The notes under the pieces were generated by a model. The model was not told the origin of the DNA. It made no database searches and saw only the letters and a list, made by a program, of their open reading frames with translations. This document shows, in pieces, positions 3,538 to 54,750 of a stretch of DNA of 64,000 nt. A program made the translations under genes and the position numbers. Location of the stretch: positions 9,932,962-9,996,961 of the forward strand of contig NC_134034.1 of assembly GCF_964204645.1 (NCBI RefSeq), given 5' to 3'. The stretch comes from Tubulanus polymorphus (lineage: Eukaryota > Animalia > Nemertea). How positions within the stretch are numbered: position 1 is the stretch's first letter; each line of letters opens with the position of its first letter.

Positions 3538-3599
<62 letters not shown>

Positions 3600-9740: not shown

Positions 9741-10479
9741 CTAGAGTAACAGGTCTTGATTTGGTGCGGTCTAGTTTCGAATGGTCGATCCAGGTCTGTT
9801 TTAGCCGGGGAAGTCTCATCACACTTCCCTAGTTTAGCACATTCAGTACAGACCCGGTTACATCCATGACTGAAATGTTCATGAAGATGTCCACTGTCCC
9901 TTAGACTAGTTAAATGTTAGATTGGTTATAGAACTAGAATGATCTTAGAACGGCCTTAAGTTGTTAGATTCGTTATAGAACTAAAATGAACTGGTCTTAA
10001 GTTGTTAGAACTAACTTAGGCTATGGAACTAAAACAAGCTTAGACTGGTCTTAAGTTGTTAGATTGGTTATAGAACCAAAATGAACTGGTCCCTAACTAC
10101 GGCCCGGGGCGAGGGCTGGTGTCGGGGTTTCAACGGTGTCCACGTTTATAAAGCATTTAAGAAATCTGTTCTCTACGTATTTAACTCTTAAACGCCGTTG
10201 ATTTATGTTGTTTTTTTGTTTCTGTTGTTGAAATCACAACTCTATCGGTAGAACTGGTATAGTAGCGTATATAGAATAGCGTGTAGTACTGTTTCCTGCT
10301 ACGATACTATATCGACTATTATCACACGTCTTATCGTCGAGTGTTGAACGTGACAATTTAATTAGATATTAATGAACTGAGGAAGAACAACGATGGGGGG
10401 GATAATGTGAAATGTGGGAAGTGGAAAGAGGTGTGACAATTGAGAAGGGAAGGGCGAAAGAATGAGAAAGATCGATTGA

Positions 10480-12035
10480 GAGGGAGAGAGAGAGGGAGAA
10501 GAGAGAAAGAAGAGACAGAGGTAGAGAGAAAGGGTAATCGAGTGGGAAGAGAGGGAGAGGGAGAGGAAGAGGGAGAAGAGAGAAAGAAGAGACAGAGGTA
10601 GAGAGAAAGGGGTAATCGAGTGGGAAGAGAGGGAGAGGGAGAGGAAGAGGGAGAAGAGAGAAAGAAGAGACAGAGGTAGAGAGAAAGAGTAATGGAGTGG
10701 GAAGAGAGGGAGAGGGAGAGGAAGAGGGAGAAGGAGAAAGAAGAGACAGAGGTAGAGAGAAAGGGTAATCGAGTGGGAAGAGAGGGAGAGGGAGAGGAAG
10801 AGGGAGAAGAGAGAAAGAAGAGACAGAGGTAGAGAGAAAGGGTAATCGAGTGGGAAGAGAGGGAGAGGGAGAGGAAGAGGGAGAAGAGAGAAAGAAGAGA
10901 CAGAGGTAGAGAGAAAGGGGTAATGGAGTGGGAAGAGAGGGAGAGGGAGAGGAAGAGGGAGAAGGAGAAAGAAGAGACAGAGGTAGAGAGAAAGGGTAAT
11001 CGAGTGGGAAGAGAGGGAGAGGGAGAGGAAGAGGGAGAAGAGAGAAAGAAGAGACAGAGGTAGAGAGAAAGGGTAATCGAGTGGGAAGAGAGGGAGAGGG
11101 AGAGGAAGAGGGAGAAGGAGAAAGAAGAGACAGAGGTAGAGAGAAAGGGTAATCGAGTGGGAAGAGAGGGAGAGGGAGAGGAAGAGGGAGAAGAGAGAAA
11201 GAAGAGACAGAGGTAGAGAGAAAGGGGTAATGGAGTGGGAAGAGAGGGAGAGGGAGAGGGAGAGGAAGAAGAGAGAAAGAAGAGACAGAGGTAGAGAGAA
11301 AGGGGTAATCGAGTGGGAAGAGAGGGAGAGGGAGAGGAAGAGGGAGAAGAGAGAAAGAAGAGACAGAGGTAGAGAGAAAGGGTAATCGAGTGGGAAGAGA
11401 GGGAGAGGGAGAGGAAGAGGGAGAAGAGAGAAAGAAGAGACAGAGGTAGAGAGAAAGGGGTAATCGAGTGGGAAGAGAGGGAGAGGGAGAGGAAGAGGGA
11501 GAAGAGAGAAAGAAGAGACAGAGGTAGAGAGAAAGAGTAATGGAGTGGGAAGAGAGGGAGAGGGAGAGGAAGAGGGAGAAGAGAGAAAGAAGAGACAGAG
11601 GTAGAGAGAAAGGGGTAATCGAGTGGGAAGAGAGGGAGAGGGAGAGGAAGAGGGAGAAGAGAGAAAGAAGAGACAGAGGTAGAGAGAAAGGGTAATCGAG
11701 TGGGAAGAGAGGGAGAGGGAGAGGAAGAGGGAGAAGAGAGAAAGAAGAGACAGAGGTAGAGAGAAAGGGGTAATCGAGTGGGAAGAGAGGGAGAGGGAGA
11801 GGAAGAGGGAGAAGAGAGAAAGAAGAGACAGAGGTAGAGAGAAAGAGTAATGGAGTGGGAAGAGAGGGAGAGGGAGAGGAAGAGGGAGAAGGAGAAAGAA
11901 GAGACAGAGGTAGAGAGAAAGGGTAATCGAGTGGGAAGAGAGGGAGAGGGAGAGGAAGAGGGAGAAGAGAGAAAGAAGAGACAGAGGTAGAGAGAAAGGG
12001 TAATCGAGTGGGAAGAGAGGGAGAGGGAGAGGATG
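10480..12035. repeat. ~77-bp purine-rich minisatellite, ~20 copies
   Basis: Recurrent gtaatcgagtgggaagagagggagaggg unit; the + strand is almost entirely A/G. Confidence 0.95.
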
Positions 12036-38066: not shown

Positions 38067-38847
38067 TGTGAGTTTCATCAAAGTTGAACAGACCTAACTT
38101 GAGTAGGGGTCTACTGCCTATGCTTGAAAGCGTATTACCTGGTCCACGGTTTTAGTGGTGTTTAGTGGTCATGTACATGTGACATTCAAAAATAAATGGT
38201 TTCAGGAAAAATTTCTATAATGTGATAAAATTGGGACGAGAGATTTTTCTTTTTTGTGGAATATAGTTTTTCATCGGTATGATATTGAAAGGTATGAGAA
38301 TGATATGTGATATAAGACGAAAAGGATAAGGACTTTATTTCATCATTTGTTTTGAGAAAATGCAGAGTCCCCTGGGGAGTCCCCTGCAGAGGTCCCCTGC
38401 AATGCGGAGGTTACGTATATCGAGCACCACATGAAAACACTGATGATATATATCAATATGTATATATATGATATTATTTTTCGATATAATGATTGAAAAG
38501 AAATTTTGATGTGCATAAAATCTAGTCATTAGAAATATATGAGCATTTCATATTAGTTTGAACCAGCAGTAATTAACCTGGAACCAACACTAGTTTTCAT
38601 TTTCAATGAATATCTCTTGCTTTAGGGGATTGCTCTAATTTTACTCATAATTGGAATTGTGGAATTTTGCTTGTGTCACGGAATTCGGGTTGTTATTTGA
38701 GGAGATTTAATGAAATGCAGTTATCAATCAACCGGCCGCCTTTACCCTGCGCGGGGTTCGGTCACGATTTGTCATTCATATGGAGATGTAAATTCCTCAG
38801 GTCCGGACAGGGGACCTGGTGATGTCTGTTTTTAACGACGGCCATGG

Positions 38848-39335
38848 AATGGGTACAAACAGCAGATTACCTATTGGGTGGGTACAGAAAACAGATTACC
38901 TATTGGGTGGGTACAGACAACAGATTGCCTAGTAGGTGGGTACAGACAACAGATTGCCCATTGGGTGGGTACAAACAGCAGATTACCTATTGGGTGGGTA
39001 CAGAAAACAGATTACCTATTGGGTGGGTACAGACAGCAGATTACCTATTGGGTGGCTACAGACAGCAGATTACCTATTGGGTGGGTACAGACAACAGATT
39101 TTATGAGTGGATGCAAGATATAAACAACAAATTGTCTGAAGGGGGTACAGACAGCAGATTGCCTGAGTAAATTTTCTGAGGGTGTGCAGACAGCAGATTT
39201 TCTGAGGGTTGCAGGGTACAAATAGCTGATTGGTTGAGGGTTGTAGGGTACAGATAGCTGATTGGTTGAGGGTTGCAGGGTACAGATAAGTGATTGGTTG
39301 AGGGTTTGCAGGGTACAGATAGCTGATTGGTTGAT
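38848..39335. repeat. ~29-bp minisatellite with a gradient of unit variants
   Basis: gggtacagacagcagattacctattgggt unit. Confidence 0.85.
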
Positions 39336-39480
39336 AGCTGCATCATAACTTTTTAAGAATACGGTTACAATTATCTTTCCGAAGTTAAAACATACATATA
39401 TGCGAATCATCCGCGAACTTTCCAACCAATCACCAGCTATTATGTAAATTAGCGCTCAGGTCACAAGTTGTAGATTGTAA

Positions 39481-40788: not shown

Positions 40789-41089
40789 CAGGTTTCGGTT
40801 GGTCTCTACCGATTCCGACGCATTCTACTCGATCTATCCCGGAATAGCGTAATCCGTAAACCTGATAGAAACGAACTCTCTACCGGCCGCTTCTATCAGG
40901 TTAACAGATTATGTTATTCCGGGATAGGTAGAGCGTATTGTGGTAGCAAATAACACAAGAAAATTGCGGAATCGGATGAGACAATGGAAACCCTACCGGA
41001 CTCTCTACCGGTCGCTTCTATCAGGATTACACAGATTCCTGGAATAGGTACGGCGTATTCCGCAATCGGTAGAGACCAATCGGAACCTG
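40789..41089. repeat. Foldback/MITE-like inverted repeat with internal hairpins
   Basis: caggtttcggttggtctctaccgatt ... aatcggtagagaccaatcggaacctg. Confidence 0.6.
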
Positions 41090-42871
41090 CCGTTAGTTTC
41101 CTATACGCGTATGATTGTGCAATTATTTAAAATCGGGCATTTCTTTCTTTCTTGTTTTATAAGATATGTAAATCAGGTATAATCGACGAATGTAAAAAGT
41201 TCGAATTCGTCTTGATTTTCGTGTATTTTGTGTAAATATGGTAAAATACGCGCTGTGAATCGGTTGAATAAGTTGCTAGAATGTATTCGGGTCCCATTTT
41301 TCCGGTCCCGAATTTCGGATTTTCTAAAAATCAATTTGCGGATCGAGGGGCTTCGAACTTCTACCGTTATGTCGACAGAGTGGTCAATCAGTCTTGCAAA
41401 TAAGACGCTCATCCTCCCCTCCCAAATTGCATCTTTATGGACATGTTTTTTTTTCTCTGAATCAAACTACTACCGCGATACACTGGAGCCATTACCGTAA
41501 TATAAAAGCTTGCTCATTCAAGGACTGAAAATTCGACACCTCGTCGAGGTCCAAGTTTTAGCCTATATCTTACAAATTCTCTTATTCCAATCGTAAAACG
41601 AATTGTTTTTAGAGTGTATGCTCCAATTCGTATCATGGTAACGACCCCTTCCTCCTCCGAATACCCCCCATCGCGCTGTACCTGATTGAGAGAATTAACG
41701 GTCCTCTGAGGTGAGCAGAGTCCTGTGCGTAGTCCCGAATACGATTTTCAGATCTTTGTTAAACCCGAAAGAAGCCTAGAAGTTCAATTATTATAGTTTT
41801 ATGGTCACCAACTATAATATAGCATTTATCGTGTATGAAAATCAGAAGCGAATCGACGGGTTTTTCTTTTCGATTATTTGCTCAATTCGTTCCGCGTGTA
41901 ATTTTTTTAAATTTCTTTCGATCATCGAATATCAGAGAAAACGAAATGTATAATCGTGTATCGTTGAGTATTCGTCGCGACTGACTGGCGTTCTCGCCGG
42001 CCTGTCGGGAAATTCGCCCGCGTTTATCATTCCTGATCATGACGTTTCTTCATTTCGGAAATATCATGTAAAAACTATTATAGAAAAGACAATAAATCTA
42101 GCGAGTAAATTTTCGTTCGCTGGTTTAAACTCATTGATCATTATTATTGTAATGATGACGATTATGATTATTATTTTTCTTTTTTTTCGTTACCGTGAAG
42201 CGTTTGTTCTTGTTGTTCTGAATCTTAACTCATATACCGTTTCTTATACGTTTAAAAGAATAAGATACGTTATAAAGGTTATATGGAATAAAATGGCAGT
42301 TGTTGAATGTGATAATTATTATTATTATTATTATTATCATCATTATTATTATGAGAACGTTTTACTTGATTGAGATATTTTGTTGTTTTTATGAGAATAA
42401 ATTTGGCTAAATGTATATGATCATATACATGTATATGAACTACTATATATGTAGTGCTCTTGTGCCTACCCCCTCGTGGTAGCTCGCTTTGCCTCGTAAT
42501 TGACGGGGCTAGGACCTATATCATGTTACTCGGATCATCTGGCTTCATTGTCTAGTGGTAAATAAAAGTGTAAGTTCTAAAATATTGCCAGCGTTGTTCA
42601 AATGCTTTCTTTTTTTTTCGTTTATGCGTAATGAATGCTGTTACGTCATGATGTTTGTCAACTATGGCTGGAGACTTGCCAATGTTGGCGATAACGGGTT
42701 TTCTGCCTTGTGGTTAAAAAGTCCTTTTGGGAAGCGTACAAGATTTCAATTAGTCTTTAATACCAGCTCATAACATACGGCTATTTTGATGAAGCGCCAC
42801 CTAGGGGTCAACACATCTACGGGCTATTGGATACAGTCCACTACGTATAAACAGGGAAGTGTCACTTCCCT

Positions 42872-43373
42872 GGGGCCGGTTGCCCAAAGGTTGGTTAAAC
42901 TCCTAACCGTTGGTTAAATCTCTAACTGACAGTTAAACTATTTACCGTCGGTTAGATTGGGTTGCTCGAAAACTTAACCAACGGTTAAATTCCCTAACCA
43001 CTGGTTAAAATTAAACGACCTATGGGGCTATGTTAGGTTCCTTATAACCAGTGGTTAAAAATGGCCAGCGTAGTTTTTTATTGCCTACATTTGGCTACAA
43101 CAGAGTAAATCGACAGTGATTCGAACATCTAAATCAATTTTCGGATGAATGTTTAAGAGAATGATTGCGTTTTGGGATAAACTTTATAGCTGAACTTTTA
43201 CGCGAGGAGCCACGGATAGAAGTCACGCTAGAATATTACCTTTCAATCAAGCGTTGCAATCTTTTTCTGTAAAATTGGCTTTTTGAATTTTCTTGTCATT
43301 ATTAATCAAAACAGACTCCATTTTAACCGGTAGTTAAGAACTTATCCACCGGTTATCTTAACCAACCTTTGAG
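42872..43373. mobile_element. Harbinger-like MITE with taacc/ggtta internal palindromes (right end truncated)
   Basis: ggggccggttgcccaaaggttggttaa ... ttaaccaacctttgag. Confidence 0.55.
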
Positions 43374-44916
43374 ATGTTCCATGTTTGGTCAAAATAACGA
43401 AGATATGGTGTCCTCTGGTGGCAATTGTATGAACTAGAAAACCGCAGATATTTTTGGCAGATTTCACAGCATATGTTTATACTCATATACCAAGTTGAGT
43501 GATTTCTATAATGAAATGAATGAATGACGTGCGAAAAACCGATCTACTAAGTTCAGTTTTTTCAAAATCTACGCCTCCAAGTGGTCAGACAAAGGGTTCG
43601 TTTTATCAAGTACCGGTACATGTCCAGGTAATGCCATTAGTAGAAATGGAAAAATGCATTTAGCGTTTTGTAGGAAGTTTGTTATATGTTGCTATATGTC
43701 ACTACTGGCCTGTGATTTCAGTGAGGTTGCACATTGTAGTGAGCACTGCTCGAAGTTCTATACGTAAATTCATATGGCAGGATCCAGCGAAAAAATGGAT
43801 TCTACGCAAATAGATCTTAGGTAATGCCTGGTGTAATGGGACGTTACTTAGAAATTCTACATCTTAAATAGTTTTTTTTAATGACACGAGCGAAAGACGG
43901 CTTTACGTTAACAAAAACGAATCAGTCGATGAATTTATCAGATATTTTGCTAGAAATAACTGAATCAATCAATCGATGATTGTTTGTTTACCGAGTAATC
44001 ATCGCACTTTACAATAGTTATACATGAAACCACAAATTATTTGAAATACCATTGCAATACAAGAACATAAAAACATAGCGAGAGACATTATTCATGGTAA
44101 AAGCTTTCCTAAAAATTTGTTTTGAGGTTGGCGTTTAAAAGCATCGACGGATTCCCGAATACGGTAAAACATTCCATCTCAGCGATCGTTATATTCATTT
44201 AGAAAGTAGGCCGGCATTTGACTCGAAATTTACGTTCAATTATTATGGTAGATTTTTTTTGTATTTTTATACGTGTACAACTGTCGTAAATGATATACAG
44301 ACTTCGTTGCAATCAAGAGGGTCTGAAAACGATCAGGGTATTCAAATTGTTTGCTTCAATCATTAGTTTTCGATCAAGTTCAATATTCCATATGCTGGGT
44401 GTATAGAGGTGGCGTCGCGTCAGTGTTTTATCATGCGGTAACTTTGATAATTCAGAGATATTTCTATAGATCAATATCTGAATGGGACCCGTGTGCCCGG
44501 TCTATATGCTGGATGTATACAGAGGTGACGTCGCGTGTGTATTCGGCGTAACGTTCCACAAACTTCAGTAAACCCATTCACAATAAGAGACAAACAGCGC
44601 GGCTGCCTATTGGTCAATATTGAAATACGCCACCAGTCGACAGTAAGTAGAATCGCCAGGCCAGTCATTCGTCTCTTGATCTTCACACTGTGCTGACAGG
44701 ATTTCGAATATGGCGTTCATCCCGGCTATCATCCTCGCGATTACGCTGCGCTCTACAAGCTGGTTCCTTCATGAGGAACGACGTCTATATGTTTTACGTG
44801 TTACTGTTTGTCTTCGCACTGTCCTGTACTGTTCTGTGTTTATTAATCCGTTCTTTTTTCAGGTTCTCACCCGTTATATTTTTCAGGGCCGATTTCTCTG
44901 TCGATTTTCAATGTTC

Positions 44917-45752
44917 TATGGAACAAAACTAATGTCCGAAAGCGTCGGCTCATTCGCCGGTCATGTGCAGAGGATGTCAGAAAAAGAGTCGGTCAGGAAA
45001 TGCTGCCCTCTGCACGCCCTCACACAGAACACGAAAACCAGGACAACTGCTTCACGTTAATCATCTAACTGCAGGGTGTGCTTGGCGACGTTAATGACGG
45101 GCAGATCTGTCGGATTGTTCGAGTTAAAAATGGAGTGGTTATACTGGACTGTCACGCCACTGATATTCATTGCGTCCTTGTGACCACCTCGGATGAGGGA
45201 TGGAGTCTACTGTCTCGCCTTTGATTTCTGGTATTCATTGAGTCGGGTGAGGGATTGAGTCTACTACTATCTCGCCTTTGATGTCTAGTATTCATTGTGT
45301 CCTTGTGACCACCTCGGACAGGGATTAATTTTCCTGTCTGCCGTTGAGTGCTAGATTTCATTGTGTCCTAGTGACCACCTCGGATAGGGATGAAGTCTCT
45401 TGTCTGCTTGTGAGTGCTAGGTTTCATTGTGTCCTCGTGACCACCTCGGGCAGGGATGAAGTCTCTTGTCACGCCTTTGAGTGCTAGTTGAGATCCTGAA
45501 TCTCAATTCGGGCAATCTGGTTGTACTGCGCTATTTTTCTCTTGACCAATTTTACAGGTTTGTCAGTTACTAACGTCGCCCAGTACATCCTGTGGTTAGA
45601 TGATGAACATGAGGCGTTGTCATTCAGGTTTTCACGTTCTGTGTGAGGGCGTGTAGAGGGCATCGAAATCCTGGCTGACTCTTTTTCTGGTATCCTCTGC
45701 ACATGACCGTCGCCGGGAAGCCGACGCTTTTGGAAATTAGTTTTGTTCCGTA
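44917..45752 (+). ncRNA. Candidate long hairpin RNA (~235-bp imperfect stem, ~360-nt repeat-containing loop)
   Basis: 44917-45153 is the imperfect reverse complement of 45511-45752. Most transitions create G-U pairs on the + strand. Confidence 0.6.
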
Positions 45753-48700
45753 CCAGGTTTTCATATCTGTTCTTTTTTTCATTTCAGGACTCCCCCAGAA
45801 GACGCCCTAAGAGGACAGAAGATGACGATACTGAACTCGGCAATCTTGAGAAAGTTAAGTTGATACACGTGTAAATTACAAATAATCAAAGAATTGTGTG
45901 ACTACAAAATGTCGTTCTTTAACTCATTCCAGCTAAACTTGGATTTGGAAAGGCCCAGAGATACATTAGCCATCTAGATCCTACCGACCAGAAGTGACCA
46001 CGGAAGACTCCAGCTTAAATTAAATTCATCAACAAAACACCAAGAGACCTTTCGAAACTGAACCTGGCAGTCTTGATAAAAAGCTAAGTTAATTTTTCAT
46101 TTCTGAGTTAGCATCAAGGGCAGGATGCGTATGGCATTTGAGAGAACAGATGCGCTGGTGAAGTTCGGCATCTCAATTTTACTATAATTGAAGATTGAAG
46201 CTCTATGACCGGTATAATGGTTATTAGTGAATTAAAATCTAAGACAATCACTGCTCTAATCTAACTCGTTAGGTCCCATATGAATATTCTTGGCTGAGTA
46301 TTGAAATGTGTAAATAGGTCAGTTATTAATCAACAGATTTTTCTTAAGTATACGTACAATTAAGTATCTTAGGTAGCATCAAATACTTCTCTAGTGTAGA
46401 TATTTCATGCCTCAACAATGAAAATATAGATAGGAAAATTTTCTAATTGACCTATCACACTTGGATATTAACAATAATTCAAATAAAGTTGGATCCGAAA
46501 TCATTGGTAGATATTTCAGGGCCTGCTAAATATACACGCAGGCAAAGATAAACTAGTTATACATATATTATTTATCAATTAAACTTTTTCGTCGTTTAAT
46601 AGATTATTTTAGCGAATGATATATTAATACATTTATAAAGATTGAGGCAATACTTTACATCACGTGTTGTGTGCTGTTTGACCATTTTCATTAATGAATT
46701 TCTCGGCGGATATCGGCTAGTGTCTAGGGCAATATCGAGATCTGGGTATTACATTTGGGGAAGTAGACTAAGGGTATAGTTGCTATATGTGATTTTAGAA
46801 ACCATGATTTGGTCTCTACACCTTGACGAATGTGGGATAAACCAAAGCTTTAATTGATTCATTTCCTGTTAGTCATGTTTGGATGAAGCATAAGGATTAT
46901 TGTTTAATCAATGATTAGAATATACCTAGAACAAATTAGGACAATATTAGCCAATTACTTAAACATCTAGTGAATTCAATATCTGATGTAAGATTACAAA
47001 TTGTTTTCATAGATATTATCAAACTGATAATCGAAATATAGCTGATAGATAATCTAAGTGAATCCATCACATCCAACTATTAGTTGAATACATAATATAT
47101 CTATTCGCCAAAATCAGTTTAAGGCAGATTTACCTTCGATCCAATAATCGAGATCAACAAATCTGCATATCGGACACACTGTCGTGAATTTTGATGGGTG
47201 AATATTCCAATATTCATTGTGTATTTAGATTGAGAACCTTATTCTGACAGGAAATCCTCAACTTAAGTCTTTCTCCTCTAGCTAATATCTCTCCTTAACT
47301 AATCTATTCTTCAAACTATTATAGTATCATTTCACCAAGCACCGCACTATGGACGTCCTGCCGATAAAAGGTTTTCAGTCGTCGTACACAGTGTACTGTA
47401 AAAAGGAAACATAGAAATGTGACTTAGGCAATTTCTAATTAAAACGATGATGTAATGATGGATTCAAATAATGATAAATTCAAATAAGAAGTCAAAATAA
47501 TGATTCGTTTTAACTTGAATCATGTCTGAAATTCTTTAGCTTAGACTAATTAATTCAATATCTTTACGTTAGAAGAGAAATAAAGGAATCTAGCTAAGAC
47601 AATATATTAATTACATATATACAATGAAGATTGATTCAATATCTTCATAAAAGAGTTTAAATCCAAACTGGATGAGTTGATTAGATAACTCAATGTGGTC
47701 TAATATCGTCAGGAACGAAGATCTATCTCACTGGGCTTCTTATATGAGGACTGTAATGAACCAGTTAGGTTTTGGTGTCATTCTGGACTCGTCAAGGTTT
47801 GAGCAAGGAATCGTAGTTTCTTAAGTCCGTAGAACCACGTTCATATAGGATGAGTGATTCTGACAGAACACTGCTCGGAAATCAAGCAGAGCCTTGCATC
47901 GGGAGCAATATTTAGAATTACTGAAATAGATACGAATGCCATTTATTAGGTACAGGTGGGTAGGAAACATTTCTAGATTTTCCAAATCTTTACAAAAGTT
48001 TATTAACCGACAATAATGTTAATTCGATAATAGGAATATTGTTTAGCTGACAATTAAAATGTAGGGTAATTACTAGGATATAGGTAATCAAATTGCCGAA
48101 ATAAACTATAGCTAAAACTATAGCTGTATAGCTCAATAATTAATGGATTGTTTAAATATCTAGAATAAAGATGGATTTAAATGATCTGAAATTCTTCTAG
48201 TATAGACATTTCAGACCTCTATATTGTTCGATAATTTGCTATTATTGAAATTTGCATGTAACGGTCCGCACGGCTGATCTTATATCCAGCCTCATATTCT
48301 ATTGTCACTAGTCTTAAACAGTGATGTATTAATGCTGCTAAACTACTTTTAATTATTGGGGTTTTTAAACCGCAGTGAATTTTGATGAATTTTCCTATAC
48401 GAAAAACATGGCGGCTAGTAATTCAAATTAACGTGTAAATTATCATCAATGCTTGTTAGGATCGTCTGCCTCAAAGAATGTTCTTCTTTACTTATTTCAG
48501 CTGAATTCTATCCTGGAAATAATGCTCCATGATTGGTAGATGACAACCGAAAAATTAAAATTAATTTGTGAATTATAATCAATGCTAATTAGGATGGTCT
48601 GCCTAAAAGGATGTTCTTTTTTTTCTTAATTCAGCTAAACTCTATCCTGGAAATAATGGGCTTCGATTGGCAAACGACAACCAGAAGTAGACGACTACCG

Positions 48701-49586
48701 ATGCCGATGAAAACTACTGCAGACGTCCAGATGAGAAGTTGTGGAGCCAGCAGCAGCGAGTTATCGCCCAACGATGGATTTCTTCCACAAATAATGGTGG
48801 ATTTCTACCAACACTGATTCAGGAGCAGCAGCAGCGGATCCCGTTAACACTCGAGGAGCAGCATGGACAATAGCGCATCTTATAAACACTGATCCAGGAG
48901 CATCAGAGACAATAGTGTATCTTATAAACACTGATTCCGGAGGAGCAAAGATATTAGTTCATCTTATAAACACTGACTCAGCTAATGAACCTAATTAGAA
49001 CCACTTGAGGAGCAGCTAGTGCCTCTTATAAACATTTTAGGAGCAGTAAGTGAATCGTATAAAACTAAGGAGCAACTGAGACAATAGTGGACTTCAAAGT
49101 ATAGTAAAGTACTGATTTATTTTTACACTTCACACTTGTACAAATTGGTCTAAAATCTTAGTCAGAAATGTAGTTCACGAAATCTACCAGATTACAGTCG
49201 ACTTAGTGGTGGAACAGAGTATGAATTCTTTAATGAAATTGAAGTTAGGATAATTAGGGTTCTGTAGTCTTAGAAGACTACGTTTGAATATTTCAATAAA
49301 ATCGCATCCAAATACTGCCATTTGTGTATTTAAACATTTACCCGAGATAAAACACCAAGAGGATTATGTGTTTTAATCTGAATAAATTTCACCTTTATTC
49401 ATGTTAGTTTATGATATTATTTACAGCAATCGTACATAAATTTAAAGCAACAAAATCAATCGGCACATAATTTTATAGATGGCAAAGCTGTTCAGTGTAT
49501 TAAATAAAATGCAGCAGTTATCACAGGGATATAGGCACTGTTTATAGGCACTGCGCCATTTACAAAGACGCATCCAAGAAGAAAGC

Positions 49587-52500
49587 TCACGACAATTGAA
49601 ACGCAGGAAACCGCGCGTTATTCGGGCTCAAAATATCCGCTAGAAAGTAAATTGTACCTGCCAAACCTGAAAAAGACAAGCTTACTAACTTAAAAGAGCT
49701 ATTTTTTGGTTAAATTTGTTTCCTTTATTCATTTTCAGTAAAAGTAAAAGAACATTTATTTACTAACCTTCAAATAATGAATAAGGTCGGTCAGGGGTTC
49801 TACAATCGTGTTTACCATAATCTAAACACCATTCAGCGAACTACAAAAAATGTATTGAATTTAATTTCACCTTGTCCGTGTGGGTTCAATTTGTTCCACG
49901 GTTGTGTGGGTTTAATCCGACTGTGGATCCAGTTCCACAGTTGTGTGGGTTTTATTTGACTCTGCATTCAGTTCCACCATTATGTGGGTGTAAATTGACT
50001 CTGGTTGCGGCCAGGTTTAATTAGTTCCCAGTAGAATCAATGTACCTACCTGTATGGCTCTGTAAAGCCAGTTGACGTCACCAGTGAGTTTATATAGGAT
50101 GAGGAACGTGTAAGCATTACCCCCCGTGCCGTGACATATACCATAACCTTTTTTCAACAAACCACGCTTCCAAACGACCTCGCCGCACTGTTTTAATTTC
50201 GACAAATATGTGTCATCTTTAAATGTCTGCAAAGCAACAACAGGAGGATATGAATTTAAAACCAGTTAAAAAGGAAAGGTTTCTTATCTCAAGTTATGAT
50301 ATTTAGGGAAATATTGGCGAGGAACTTCCAAAATACCTTATTTGCATAATTTATGCATCTATTTATGCACCATTTTATGCACCATTTTCAAAATTCTTGA
50401 GCGGCAATTGAGAATTCCTTTTGCCAAACATGAGAATTGACTAGGTATCACTAGTGTGATTGAAGCAGGACATAACTTTTGTGGTAACAGATGATTCCAT
50501 TTGTGGCAAGTGATGATCCACCAGGTGTCGCTCGTGTGCAGTAGGACATCAAATATTGTGGTAATAGAGGATTCCTTCAATCCATGGCAAATGATGACCC
50601 ACCAGGTGTCGCTAGTGTGCAGTAGGATATCAACTACTGCACTGGAAAGTGAAGATCCACAAGGTGTCGCTAGTAGTTAGTCGATATGAAACTGACTACC
50701 GGTATTGGTGGGACAGAACCATATTGACTGCAATTCAGAGCTCAGCGACTTACTCACCTTATACGCCATGGCGAACATGAAGGCCCAACCCGGAGCTCCG
50801 TGACACCAGTGTACTAACTTATCCCCACTCCGGCTGCCGATGGACGAGGGAAAATTTCCCGATGGAAACTGAAGCGTTGACAACCAATCGACGGTCGGAC
50901 GAACAAAACGATCGAGTTGGCTGAGAAATTTCTCATCATTGCACTGAAAATGATTATTCTGGTTTAAGGGATAAATTTAGATGAAAATCAACAAAACCTT
51001 AAATACGTGAAACCTCTGGATAAAACAACATTATACATTTACGCAAAGATGGATCAACTACAAATTAGATCCATATCTAACCCAAATTAAGCGGGTTTTA
51101 GACTAACGATCAAATGGCCCATGAAAGGCCCAAAATGCCCCAAAATGAACAAACATACATTCAACCATCGATTATTTGCCAGCCTCAGTTTTACGCACTA
51201 ATTTCTAATCCCTGATTACAAAAATTCAGTTCACTGTCAATTGAAATCAAGCTAAAAAATCTATAACTTGTATCTCATTTCTGCTGAGCTTAAAATTTGA
51301 TGCGGGCAGCCACCTGTGTACCCAAGACATAACTTTTTCTGAAATCACGATCAAGCTAACCATAACAGGCAGTTATAGAAATGGCAGACCTGGCAGTTGT
51401 AGAAATGAACTGATTAAAGATTTGCAATTTACAAACAAAATGACATGGCCGATTAGGAGAAACAAGGTATCAATTTTTCAACCTTATGTTCCGTTACTTA
51501 TTACCCATCGAGTCCACAATCAAGAGTTTGACTGGATTTTGCTCATAAAATCCTTAAAGGGGCCTAATATATACAATGAATAGATAGTAAAGTTAGCGGA
51601 TACGTACTTGCATGAGTATGTACATGATACCAGAGATCCCGTGAGCTGCTCCGAGATATTTACTATCGTGCCATTCGTACATCAACGGCGCTTGAGAGTT
51701 CTCCGCGTGCGATAATCTACGTCCGGACTCGATTATACGATTAAACACCTGTTAAAACAAACAAACGTCCGAATATTGGTACATTGTATTAGAATTCACG
51801 GGTGGATTTAGGGGGTGTCGTCGGCGGTACGGACCCCTGACGTTCCATTGGGGTCGCCCTTTTTCAGTTGTTCATTTCTCCGTAATGATCTAACGCCAAG
51901 GGGTGGAACTTCACTAATAGCCTATGACGCCCTGCTTTATCAAAAAGATGCCTTTGTCATTTCATCTGGACCCCTGCCTTCCAAGAAACGCCCCTGGGAT
52001 TCTCAAAAATCAGAAATTCGCCGACTTCCCTGCTCCCTGTACTGGATTCCCCAACTTTTTACAGAAAAGAAATTCCCCTGATTTCCAGGTAAGACTGTCC
52101 ACCCTGCGTTATGTTGTTCTATGATGAGCGCTATTTCTACCCTTCTATTACCGAAATGGATCAATCATCTAACTATTCTTGCCTTAGTTACCTTTTCAAC
52201 AATGGACTGATCGACGGCGCCATCCCCTAGATGAAGCCGTACAAACAATAACGCGTACAAATAACCGACTCTGCCGAACAACAGCTCGTCGGGAGGGCTG
52301 CCCTTACAAACGCTGTCATGGAGACTTATCAATCTGAAATTGACTTAATAAATGGGTTTAAGAAGACCACAGTTGCCTATTTCTGAAAAGTGCTATCAGT
52401 AACAAATTGAATATTATTTCGGGGAAAAATTTCATTGGAATATAATATAAAAGAAAATTTTCAAATTAATCAGTAATCTACGTTAAGACCCTCAGCAACA

Positions 52501-54750
52501 TCTTCCATATTTGTGTTCAAATTAATCAGTAATCAACAGTAAGACCCTCAGTAACATCTTTCATATTTCTGTTCAAATTAATCAGTAATCAATAGTAAGA
52601 CCCTCAGTAACATCTTTCATATTTCTGTTCAAATTAATCAGTAATCAACAGTAAGACCCTCAGTAACATCTTTCATATTTCTGTTCAAATTAATCAGTAA
52701 TCAACAGTAACACCCTCGGTAACATCTTTCATATTTCTGTTCAAATTAATCAGTAATCAACAGTAACACCCTCGGTAACATCTTTCATATTTCTGTTCAA
52801 ATTAATCAGTAATCAACAGTAAGACCCTCAGTAACATTTTTCATATTTCTGTTCAAATTAATCAGTAATCAACAGTAAGACCCTCAGTAACATTTTTCAT
52901 ATTTCTGTTCAAATTAATCAGTAATCAATAGTACGACCCTCAGTAACATCTTTCATATTTCTGTTCAAATTAATCAGTAATCAATAGTAAGACCCTCAGT
53001 AACATCTTTCATATTTCTGTTCAAATTAATCAGTAATCAACAGTAAGACCCTCAGTAACATCTTTCATATTTCTGTTCAAATTAATCAGTAATCAACAGT
53101 AAGACCCTCAGTAACATCTTTCATATTTCTGTTCAAATTAATCATTAATCAACAGTAAGACCCTCAGTAACATCTTTCATATTTCTGTTCAAATTAATCA
53201 GTAATCAACAGTAACACCCTCAGTAACATCTTTCATATTTCTGTTCAAATTAATCAGTAATCAACAGTAATACCCTCAGTAACATCCTTCATATTATCGT
53301 TCTTTGTTATAAAAGATTAACAAATACTAAAAATCAGGAACAGTAGGCAGCTCTGGAATTTTTTTGGCAATCCATCAATACAGTGTGAAATGGATTTAAA
53401 AACAATGGGTTATTCAGATTCGCGCACAGTTTCACTGGCCGTATAAAGACTAAATCAAGAGAAATATCCCCAAAAATTGATCCCGGACAAAAATAGATTT
53501 AGACTTCGATACGTACTGTTGTAAACAATTAAAACTGTCATCTTTTCGTCCGATCTCGTTGTAGATGACCGCTCCAAGCGCCAATGGTCCGGCGTCTCCG
53601 CATAAAAACGACACGCGTTTCCCTTTCAAATGACGTAGAGGGCGCTTCAGATAACTTTCAGCCGATTTCAAATATTGTCCGTTTTCGTCGTCGAGCTTTC
53701 GATGCAGGTGATAATAAAGCAGAGCGATGCCTGATAAAGAAATTAGGCCGGGTTTATTTCAGCGAGTTCCAGGGCCAGTTTTAAACGGTCTGGGGCTGGC
53801 TTTAAGGGAACTTAACCATCAACCCCCCACTTCTAATTGTCACACCCATGGTCTATGACCATTTCTACCCATAGCCAATGTAACAATTTAAGATCAGTCT
53901 ACAAAATAAAGACCATGTTTGATATAGTGCATTGACGCTTCTCGGGCCGGGTCCATAGTTGTGACTTAAGACCAAAAGTGGTCTTAAACCTCCAGACCGG
54001 TCTTAAGTTGTTAGATTGGCTAAAGAACTAAGTTTGTCTTAGACCGGTCTTAAGTCTAAGCCCTGTCTATGGAACCGGCCCCTGAATCTGTGACCCTGTT
54101 TTTACTAACCAGACATTCCGGTATAGACCGAAAAATCATCGTTGTCCACTTCTTCGGCTTTCAATCCATGTTCCATGTGCGACAGCAATCTTTGGATTCC
54201 TTGTTGAATTTTTTTACGTGAATCCGCCGCCAGCTAGAGGATACAATAGAACCAACTATCAGAACAGGATGGCCCACAGGGGGTCGTAGGTTAATGTAAA
54301 AATGATTATCCCTGTTAATACAGTGTCTACATACAATGTATATTAGACACTAGTTAGTTACCTAACGTTGGTGGTAAGCTTTTTATAATCGGATGAGCTT
54401 ATACCAACTGTGGTTTGTGAAAATATCCGATCGTGAAACTAAACCACAGACCACAGGGACTTGTCACAGTTGATAGTGAATGAATAAAACCAATATCATT
54501 ATCAATGACCAGATCCACTATCCCTGTATAATAAAGAAACTATTATCATACAGTTGCAGAGATACTGGTACCCCCATCATTGGTCTCATCCATTATCAAT
54601 CGTGACAAGTCCCTGTGCCACAGACAGGTTACTGACTAATTAGTCCAAAAACCTCACCCGCCCATCATCAATCCCAGCGTTTTTCTCTTCTTTGCTTTTT
54701 GTTAATTCTGGGAAATGATTCGTAAAATGTCGCCCATCTTTAACATCCAT
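49587..54750 (-). CDS. LANCL2: LanC-like protein (LANCL1/2 family), 409 aa, 9 exons
   Basis: Exons 54750-54658, 54233-54110, 53730-53517, 52333-52192, 51748-51608, 50943-50758, 50226-50050, 49840-49768, 49666-49587 (1230 nt). Motifs: SVYTGMSGIALLY, FLCGDAGPLA, PDELLFGRVGY, YLGAAHG, Zn ligands WCHG and GICHG, RTPDRPYSLFEGLAG, RFPAFQL. Choice of LANCL2 over LANCL1 is tentative. Confidence 0.95.
52460..53295. repeat. 56-bp tandem repeat, ~15 copies (LANCL intron 3)
   Basis: caaattaatcagtaatcaacagtaagaccctcagtaacatctttcatatttctgtt unit. Confidence 0.95.
53944..54082. mobile_element. MITE, same family as 9601-9740
   Basis: Near-identical reverse complement of 9601-9740. Confidence 0.7.
54452..54617. 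mobile_element. 166-bp MITE with 8-bp TSD (P or hAT superfamily)
   Basis: TIRs CACAGGGACTTGTCAC and TSD ccacagac on both sides. The uninterrupted target sequence is visible in the paralogous repeat at ~33410. Confidence 0.8.

Follow-up and report, generated by a model that had tools for sequence, protein, structure and literature searches.

The long inverted repeat at positions 44917-45752 of the window, by which we mean the whole 64,000-nucleotide stretch of DNA analyzed here from the ribbon worm Tubulanus polymorphus, probably represents a single, worn member of a non-coding repeat family that is dispersed through the genome. A hairpin forms the core of this repeat, and the G:U bias of that hairpin is ancestral and would have been kept by selection while the family spread. 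The features discussed below all lie on the plus strand:

43807-49316 (approximate ends), plus strand: this copy of the dispersed non-coding repeat, from own-genome matches and flank divergence
44710-45060, plus strand: 116-aa A-poor open frame that crosses from the left flank into the left arm, from the list of open reading frames (ORFs) and a 28-copy check
44767-45936, plus strand: conserved core, consisting of 150 bp of left flank, the hairpin, and 185 bp of right flank, from the 28-copy alignment
44855-44886, plus strand: two polypyrimidine-CAG (splice-acceptor-like) motifs with a variable spacer, from the 28-copy alignment
44917-45153, plus strand: left hairpin arm, from inverted-repeat blocks, formal arm alignment, and RNAalifold
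45154-45510, plus strand: loop with a tandem array of 57-66-bp units (45189-45487), from the repeat finder and copy comparison
45511-45752, plus strand: right hairpin arm, from inverted-repeat blocks, formal arm alignment, and RNAalifold
45753-45862, plus strand: CCAG/GT and a polypyrimidine-CAG motif (to 45786), an A/G-rich stretch, and a GTTAAGT-type motif, from the 28-copy alignment

Geometry and Predicted Folding of the Hairpin

The repeat finder resolves the inverted repeat into four collinear inverted blocks, spanning 44917-45131 and 45533-45752, with a complementarity of 75-92%, and the complete arms are ~79% complementary. A local alignment of the arms contains 197 Watson-Crick (WC) pairs and, in the plus-strand RNA, 24 G:U pairs versus 6 A:C mismatches, together with 23 other mismatches and 9 gap columns. 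Aligned globally from end to end, the arms yield 186 WC pairs, 25 G:U pairs, and 5 A:C mismatches (two-sided binomial p = 0.0003); other mismatches number 20-23 and gap columns 7-9 in the two alignments. The plus-strand RNA of this region has a predicted folding energy of -438.1 kcal/mol (z -19.1), which is ~100 kcal/mol better than the -336.2 kcal/mol (z -13.8) predicted for the minus-strand RNA.

These results agree with much of what a first-pass annotation of the window had described from the letters of the DNA. A diverged inverted repeat with the arm boundaries given above is recovered by both the repeat finder and the alignments, and the ~25 G:U pairs versus ~5 A:C mismatches counted in that annotation compare with 24-25 versus 5-6 in the formal alignments (p about 3e-4). 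The annotation had also proposed folding both strands, and the plus strand is the one favored. The tandem array in the loop was absent from its description.

Copy Number and Composition of the Family

Within the window, the hairpin is indeed the only one of its kind, as had been noted at first pass, and no second match to the arms was found elsewhere in the element or in the window. For the genome, this statement does not hold: a search of the species' own 268-Mb assembly with the left arm yields at least 313 candidate matches, and the earlier picture of a single locus has to be abandoned. The 40 left-arm matches that were scored are 82-93% identical and are located on contigs C1-C12, and the loop has 146 candidate matches in the same genome. 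Because one element can match the arm query twice, the family is estimated to comprise ~150-300 copies. Many genomic copies had been named at first pass as a finding that would speak for a DNA transposon with terminal inverted repeats (TIRs); the copies exist, but the arms are not TIRs, as described below.

Thirty loci were fetched, and the copy analyses that follow concern the 28 of these, out of several hundred, in which both arms are present. Every one of these copies is collinear with the window copy, and a single orientation is shared by all 28. Their left arms score 306-407 against the window left arm and 181-265 against the window right arm. The left arms are thus closer to the left arm than to the right arm, which indicates that the arms diverged before the family spread.

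The copies fall into several subfamilies that are 1-22% apart. The hairpin module is usually 776-781 nt in length, and the loop ranges from 143 to 357 nt with a variable number of tandem units. The 3' part of the loop is conserved in sequence, with many copies 92% identical over loop positions 191-353. In L018, L019, L022, and L025, a different loop repeat unit with a GCTTCGGGC motif is observed (alignment columns 260-600), and the arms can still be aligned; in this subfamily, the arms are better conserved than the type of loop repeat between them. Internal deletions are present in many copies. In addition, some copies are mosaic, with arms from one subfamily and a flank from another. When L006, L008, and L024 are compared with L002-L005 and L017-L030, the left flank is seen to carry the deletion and the substitutions of the other subfamily. 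The mosaic copies suggest recombination or template switching between family members. On account of these copies, a tree of the full alignment conflicts with a tree of the arms, and the arm tree was used for the branch tests.

Extent, Core, and Ends of the Repeat

A core of 1.17 kb is common to all subfamilies, and many copies align only from its left boundary at 44767. The majority-base frequency in the 28-copy alignment is 0.79-0.96 in the core and 0.2-0.7 outside of it; a comparison of divergence between the core and the outer flanks was abandoned, given that mosaicism or truncation causes the outer regions to misalign. Homology between copies passes through the 100 bp beside each arm and far beyond, in one orientation, extending at least 150 bp to the left and at least 185 bp to the right of the arms in all subfamilies and 1.1 kb to the left and 3.5 kb to the right in the window subfamily. 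None of the 28 copies ends at the arms, and the sequence adjoining the arms is conserved element sequence, not a TSD-bearing flank.

With 41000-44900 and 45760-49500 as queries, matches in the genome begin at position 2808 of the former and end at position 3557 of the latter. On the left, the flanks of the window copy, L002, and L003 diverge at 43807, an end common to two independent copies, and the 5' end of the window subfamily begins with CAAATAG. Left ends are otherwise scattered (43807, 44060-44225, and 44385-44405; -167 to beyond -1500 in the D and E subfamilies) and vary even among close relatives. On the right, other copies extend 610-630 bp past 49316, and L033 and about 14 other places reach a common end (L033:2663 or 2681). 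As the other copies run past 49316 to this shared end, the window copy, from which the right-hand part is missing, is incomplete on the right. Scattered left ends combined with one shared right end would fit copying from RNA, a pattern that mosaicism and internal deletions confound. The shared 3' end at L033:2664-2683 coincides with a 6-bp palindrome (CCTTGG, 8 nt, CCAAGG). In L033, the single readable 3' end, neither a poly(A) or microsatellite tail nor CTRR is present; a 3' CTRR, along with a 5' TC and a short subterminal hairpin on the 3' side, would be expected of a Helitron-like rolling-circle element.

Further repeats are found within the element. The window copy contains a 130-bp direct duplication that is 81.5% identical (48420-48682) and a tandem array of 2.9 units of 42 bp (48854-48976), and in other copies the stretch corresponding to 45836-45957 itself occurs in tandem, at a period of about 173 bp. 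On the minus strand of L028, about 1.0-1.5 kb upstream of its truncated copy, an open frame of 154 aa ends in CCVPYC, which we take to resemble the start of a THAP zinc finger.

Inheritance of the G:U Bias

The G:U bias is a property of the family. Each of the 28 copies contains 22-38 G:U pairs versus 5-13 A:C mismatches, and the plus-strand hairpin is predicted to be more stable than the minus-strand hairpin in all 28, by 34-99 kcal/mol (mean -334 versus -265 kcal/mol). Helices of WC and G:U pairs run uninterrupted for 26-47 bp in every copy, a length sufficient for dsRNA-binding proteins. The family consensus comprises 196 WC pairs, 28 G:U pairs, 4 A:C mismatches, and 13 transversion mismatches, and the 28 versus 4 split corresponds to a two-sided binomial p of about 2e-5.

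The window copy inherits 23 of its 27 G:U pairs, 18 of which occur in the family consensus and 5 in that of the subfamily; the other 4 are in neither. Since the bias is already in the consensus and the pairs are inherited, the hairpin would have been shaped in the ancestors of the family and not at the window locus. The private changes of the window copy, measured against its subfamily consensus, are mostly pair-breaking, with 8 changes from WC to a transversion mismatch and 3 from WC to A:C versus 5 from WC to G:U. To judge by these counts, the window copy is the carrier of an inherited structure that is now wearing out.

Probable Selection on the Plus-Strand Fold

The arms covary across the family. 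Both sides change in 47 pair columns, compared with 24.1 +/- 3.8 for random partners (0 of 2000) and 21-29 in a control with slid partners. Among the alignment cells in which both sides of a WC-majority pair have changed, 81 of 118 are again WC. On the arm tree, there are 22 instances in which a single branch carries a change on each side of a pair, compared with 7.2 +/- 2.6 (0 of 5000) by chance and 8-13 for slid partners; paired columns thus co-change three times more than chance. For 16 copies that represent all subfamilies, RNAalifold predicts 241 pairs, and compensatory change is seen in 36 of these. The subfamily consensuses contain full switches, such as A:U to C:G or G:C, that proceed via G:U or A:C intermediates.

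Parsimony on the arm tree, with some noise added to the counts by the mosaic copies, assigns 118 changes from WC to G:U and 67 from WC to A:C (p = 2e-4). A strand-symmetric process predicts equality here, because any WC pair can undergo one transition to G:U and one to A:C. The corresponding counts are 52 versus 21 on internal branches and 66 versus 46 on terminal branches, a difference that is in the expected direction and, at a rough estimate of about p = 0.09, does not look significant. The same copies show no strand asymmetry in their conserved flanks and loop, where A to G plus C to T changes number 107 and G to A plus T to C changes number 109. Plus-strand transitions within the arms are also balanced (152 versus 136), as is expected at mutation-selection balance.

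Taken together, the covariation and the unbiased substitution in unpaired parts argue for selection on the plus-strand fold, and at the level of the family this fold looks selected. The view expressed at first pass that the asymmetry is unlike the neutral decay of a DNA inverted repeat is in agreement with both observations. The accompanying proposal of a duplex under plus-strand selection holds for the family, in which the covariation and the 118 versus 67 excess are seen, and fails for this locus, at which the structure is inherited and decaying.

Motifs and Open Reading Frames around the Hairpin

The hairpin is bordered by conserved motifs. The two polypyrimidine-CAG motifs are located just upstream of it and are conserved in nearly all copies. 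On the downstream side (45753-45862), the A/G-rich stretch is variable and rich in indels, and the motifs on either side of it are conserved. The layout of this downstream region looks exon-like, with the flanking motifs as putative splice sites, and the polypyrimidine-CAG motifs on both sides of the hairpin together with the exon-like stretch resemble a piece of an unspliced gene. Splice-site-like motifs in this position are awkward for the retroposition of a processed RNA.

All ORFs of 70 aa or longer in the repeat lie within 44471-45702, in the left flank and the arms, and none of that length is present in 45703-49316. Over the span of the 116-aa frame, at least one frame is free of stops in 22 of the 28 copies, and often two frames are stop-poor. 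The frame displays no codon periodicity (73/66/88, p = 0.19). A Pfam search with three ORFs over the arms and the left flank returned nothing above the cut-off, and no relative of the 116-aa ORF was found among 5.8 billion proteins. A coding reading of this frame was considered and rejected, given the lack of periodicity and the two stop-poor frames; the frame is probably compositional, a by-product of the A-poor strand. On this evidence, the element is a non-coding repeat without a credible ORF. No match to the Rfam 15 covariance models was obtained for 43000-48000 on either strand with E up to 1, and metagenome contigs searched for exact occurrences of the right arm's most conserved 24-mer likewise contained none.

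Other Features of the Window

Three further regions of the window were observed. A purine-rich (GA) satellite at 10478-12033 consists of about 20 units of 77 bp at 97% identity and is responsible for the extreme GC skew (0.79) and AT skew (0.57) of its 2-kb bin. At 38844-39425, overlapping ORFs on both strands contain a repeated peptide-like unit, GWVQT.DYLLGGYR.QITYWVGT..., and correspond to a short tandem repeat that is open in several frames. On the minus strand at 50017-53671, exon-sized ORFs carry a GxCHGxxGN motif, presumably the one typical of LanC-like proteins. A distance of about 700 bp separates the end of the repeat copy from the nearest ORF of this last region, and the two are arranged tail to tail.

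Comparison with Known Systems

Stringent LINEs recognize their own RNA or that of a SINE by 3' stem-loops, whose stems are tens of base pairs long and 3'-terminal. Similar to these cis-acting stem-loops of retroelements, the hairpin described here would be a structure of the sense RNA, with compensatory change across subfamilies and with variable 5' ends and a shared 3' end of the element. The differences are that the hairpin is ~235 bp long and lies kilobases from the 3' end, and that neither a reverse-transcriptase partner nor a tail has been identified.

The arrangement of the arms is reminiscent of MITEs and foldback transposons with long TIRs, which are also multi-copy and have long inverted arms and a central tandem array. 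In the present family, however, the arms are internal, and the mobile unit is several kilobases in length and asymmetric. The strand-specific wobble bias and the covariation seen here are not features of TIRs.

The hairpin also resembles the Drosophila hpRNA loci that give rise to Dicer-2-dependent endo-siRNAs, in that both are long, imperfect inverted repeats of one strand with a predicted duplex of several hundred base pairs that tolerates G:U pairs. The Drosophila loci are described as single host loci or small clusters that are derived from, and aimed at, a target gene (PMC10317233). The present hairpin, by contrast, occurs in hundreds of dispersed copies inside a larger repeat. With regard to a target in trans, the 40 scored arm matches comprise only family copies, and the ORFs of the arms have no Pfam or protein relative.

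A further likeness is to engineered G:U hairpin-RNA transgenes (Nat Commun 2022), in which C-to-T changes in one arm keep the RNA duplex and spoil the DNA repeat; in plants, hairpins with 18-22% G:U avoided self-silencing (PMC9263138). The design principle is the same in the natural hairpin, of which ~12% is G:U. The engineered hairpins are artificial constructs in plants, whereas the hairpin of this study belongs to a natural animal repeat.

Proposed Mechanism and Alternative Explanations

In the account that we consider probable, selection for pairing in a single-stranded molecule of plus sense would keep the G:U bias during the spread of the family. The folding molecule would most likely be the element's own RNA, because G:U counts fully only in RNA. 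The fold would serve the element in cis, for example in recognition by a reverse transcriptase or a processing enzyme, in stability, or in export, and the family would move through that RNA. A copy that has landed would then decay neutrally, and the window copy would be at that stage. Some variants of this scheme may be considered. G:T is the least harmful mismatch in single-stranded DNA, which makes a DNA strand intermediate an alternative folding molecule, and the repeat may be a rolling-circle element that moves one DNA strand. By analogy with the engineered hairpins, G:U pairs may have been favored for spoiling the DNA inverted repeat while keeping the RNA duplex (PMC9263138). As a cis signal, the hairpin could govern copying, stability, or export; alternatively, it could be a substrate of Dicer.

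Dicing as the reason for which the hairpins are kept, with the family as a multi-copy source of endo-siRNAs or other small RNAs that silence its own members, an autonomous partner, or another gene, be it of the host or selfish, appears unlikely. This reading transfers to the family the mechanism that the first-pass annotation had proposed for one locus. The long, strand-specific stem, its maintenance by compensatory change, and the uninterrupted 26-47-bp helices of every copy would all suit such a role, and G:U-rich hairpins are proven RNAi triggers that are free of the drawbacks of perfect DNA inverted repeats (PMC9263138). However, no target was found, since each of the 40 scored genome matches to the arm is a member of the family and the arms have no match elsewhere in the element or window, and selection along lineages that are still spreading favors what benefits the element, for which self-silencing has no obvious benefit. 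Far less likely still is that the hairpin belongs to a unique host gene, an hpRNA or endo-siRNA precursor or else a dedicated ADAR substrate, that is selected at this locus. The hairpin, its strand bias, and its folding energy are as the first-pass annotation described them in proposing a hairpin-RNA gene under selection, but this proposal is very improbable in view of the hundreds of dispersed copies, the inheritance of 23 of the 27 G:U pairs, the disruptive, pair-breaking private changes, and the 610-630 bp missing from the 3' side of the copy. Scarcely credible, finally, is a MITE or foldback DNA transposon with the 235-bp arms as TIRs. Such an element would be expected to be multi-copy, with a long inverted repeat and a tandem array between the arms, as is observed, but homology in the same orientation continues past both arms in 28 of 28 copies and no copy ends at the arms. 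The arms as TIRs were rejected as they are internal to the conserved 1.17-kb core.

It is highly doubtful that selection played no part, with the bias as a fossil of strand-specific mutation or editing (transcription-coupled asymmetry, A-to-I editing of a retro-copied RNA by ADAR, or C-to-U deamination) and the co-changes as products of gene conversion between the arms or of mismatch repair. Most of the bias is already ancestral (28 versus 4), which leaves room for a single old event, the mosaic copies attest to recombination in the family, and the U of 11 of the 28 consensus G:U pairs precedes G, which fits CpG deamination as one source. CpG decay may contribute, but it is strand-symmetric and thus cannot make the bias. 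The unpaired parts, moreover, are symmetric, and the same 107 versus 109 in the flanks and loop ruled out strand-asymmetric mutation as a candidate; the excess of WC to G:U over WC to A:C changes continues within the family; and conversion would erase G:U sites, whereas these sites persist at the same columns in all subfamilies. ADAR avoids a 5' G neighbor. The 5' neighbors of the G in the 28 consensus G:U pairs are G in 9, U in 10, C in 8, and A in 1, the opposite of the ADAR preference, and an ADAR fossil was rejected on these grounds. A neutral or editing origin is retained mainly because the ancestral part of the bias needs an outgroup to polarize it.

Biological Implications

The safest statement is that the locus appears to be a decaying copy of a mobile non-coding repeat whose core hairpin looks to have been selected as a plus-strand fold. 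The locus is no longer a lead as a unique hairpin-RNA gene. For a dispersed repeat, however, the strand-specific wobble bias, the compensatory change across subfamilies that are 12-22% apart, and the unbiased substitution in unpaired parts are unusual, and this combination marks the hairpin as a likely functional single-strand structure of a mobile element. A literature search that was not aimed at ribbon worms found no papers on such loci in Nemertea.

Taken a step further, the selected ~235-bp G:U hairpin at the core of this ribbon-worm mobile repeat might function within a small-RNA system, either as an hpRNA that a transposon carries and that supplies Dicer or as a structure that the element requires for its copying, a reading that we hold to be quite unlikely as it stands. 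If it is true, the hairpin would represent a natural equivalent to the G:U design of the engineered hairpins. If the RNA is diced or needed for copying, the family would provide a natural, long, G:U-wobbled hairpin that is maintained by selection, and, if transcribed and diced or needed for copying, it would give access to the biology of small RNAs or retroelements in a phylum that has been little studied.
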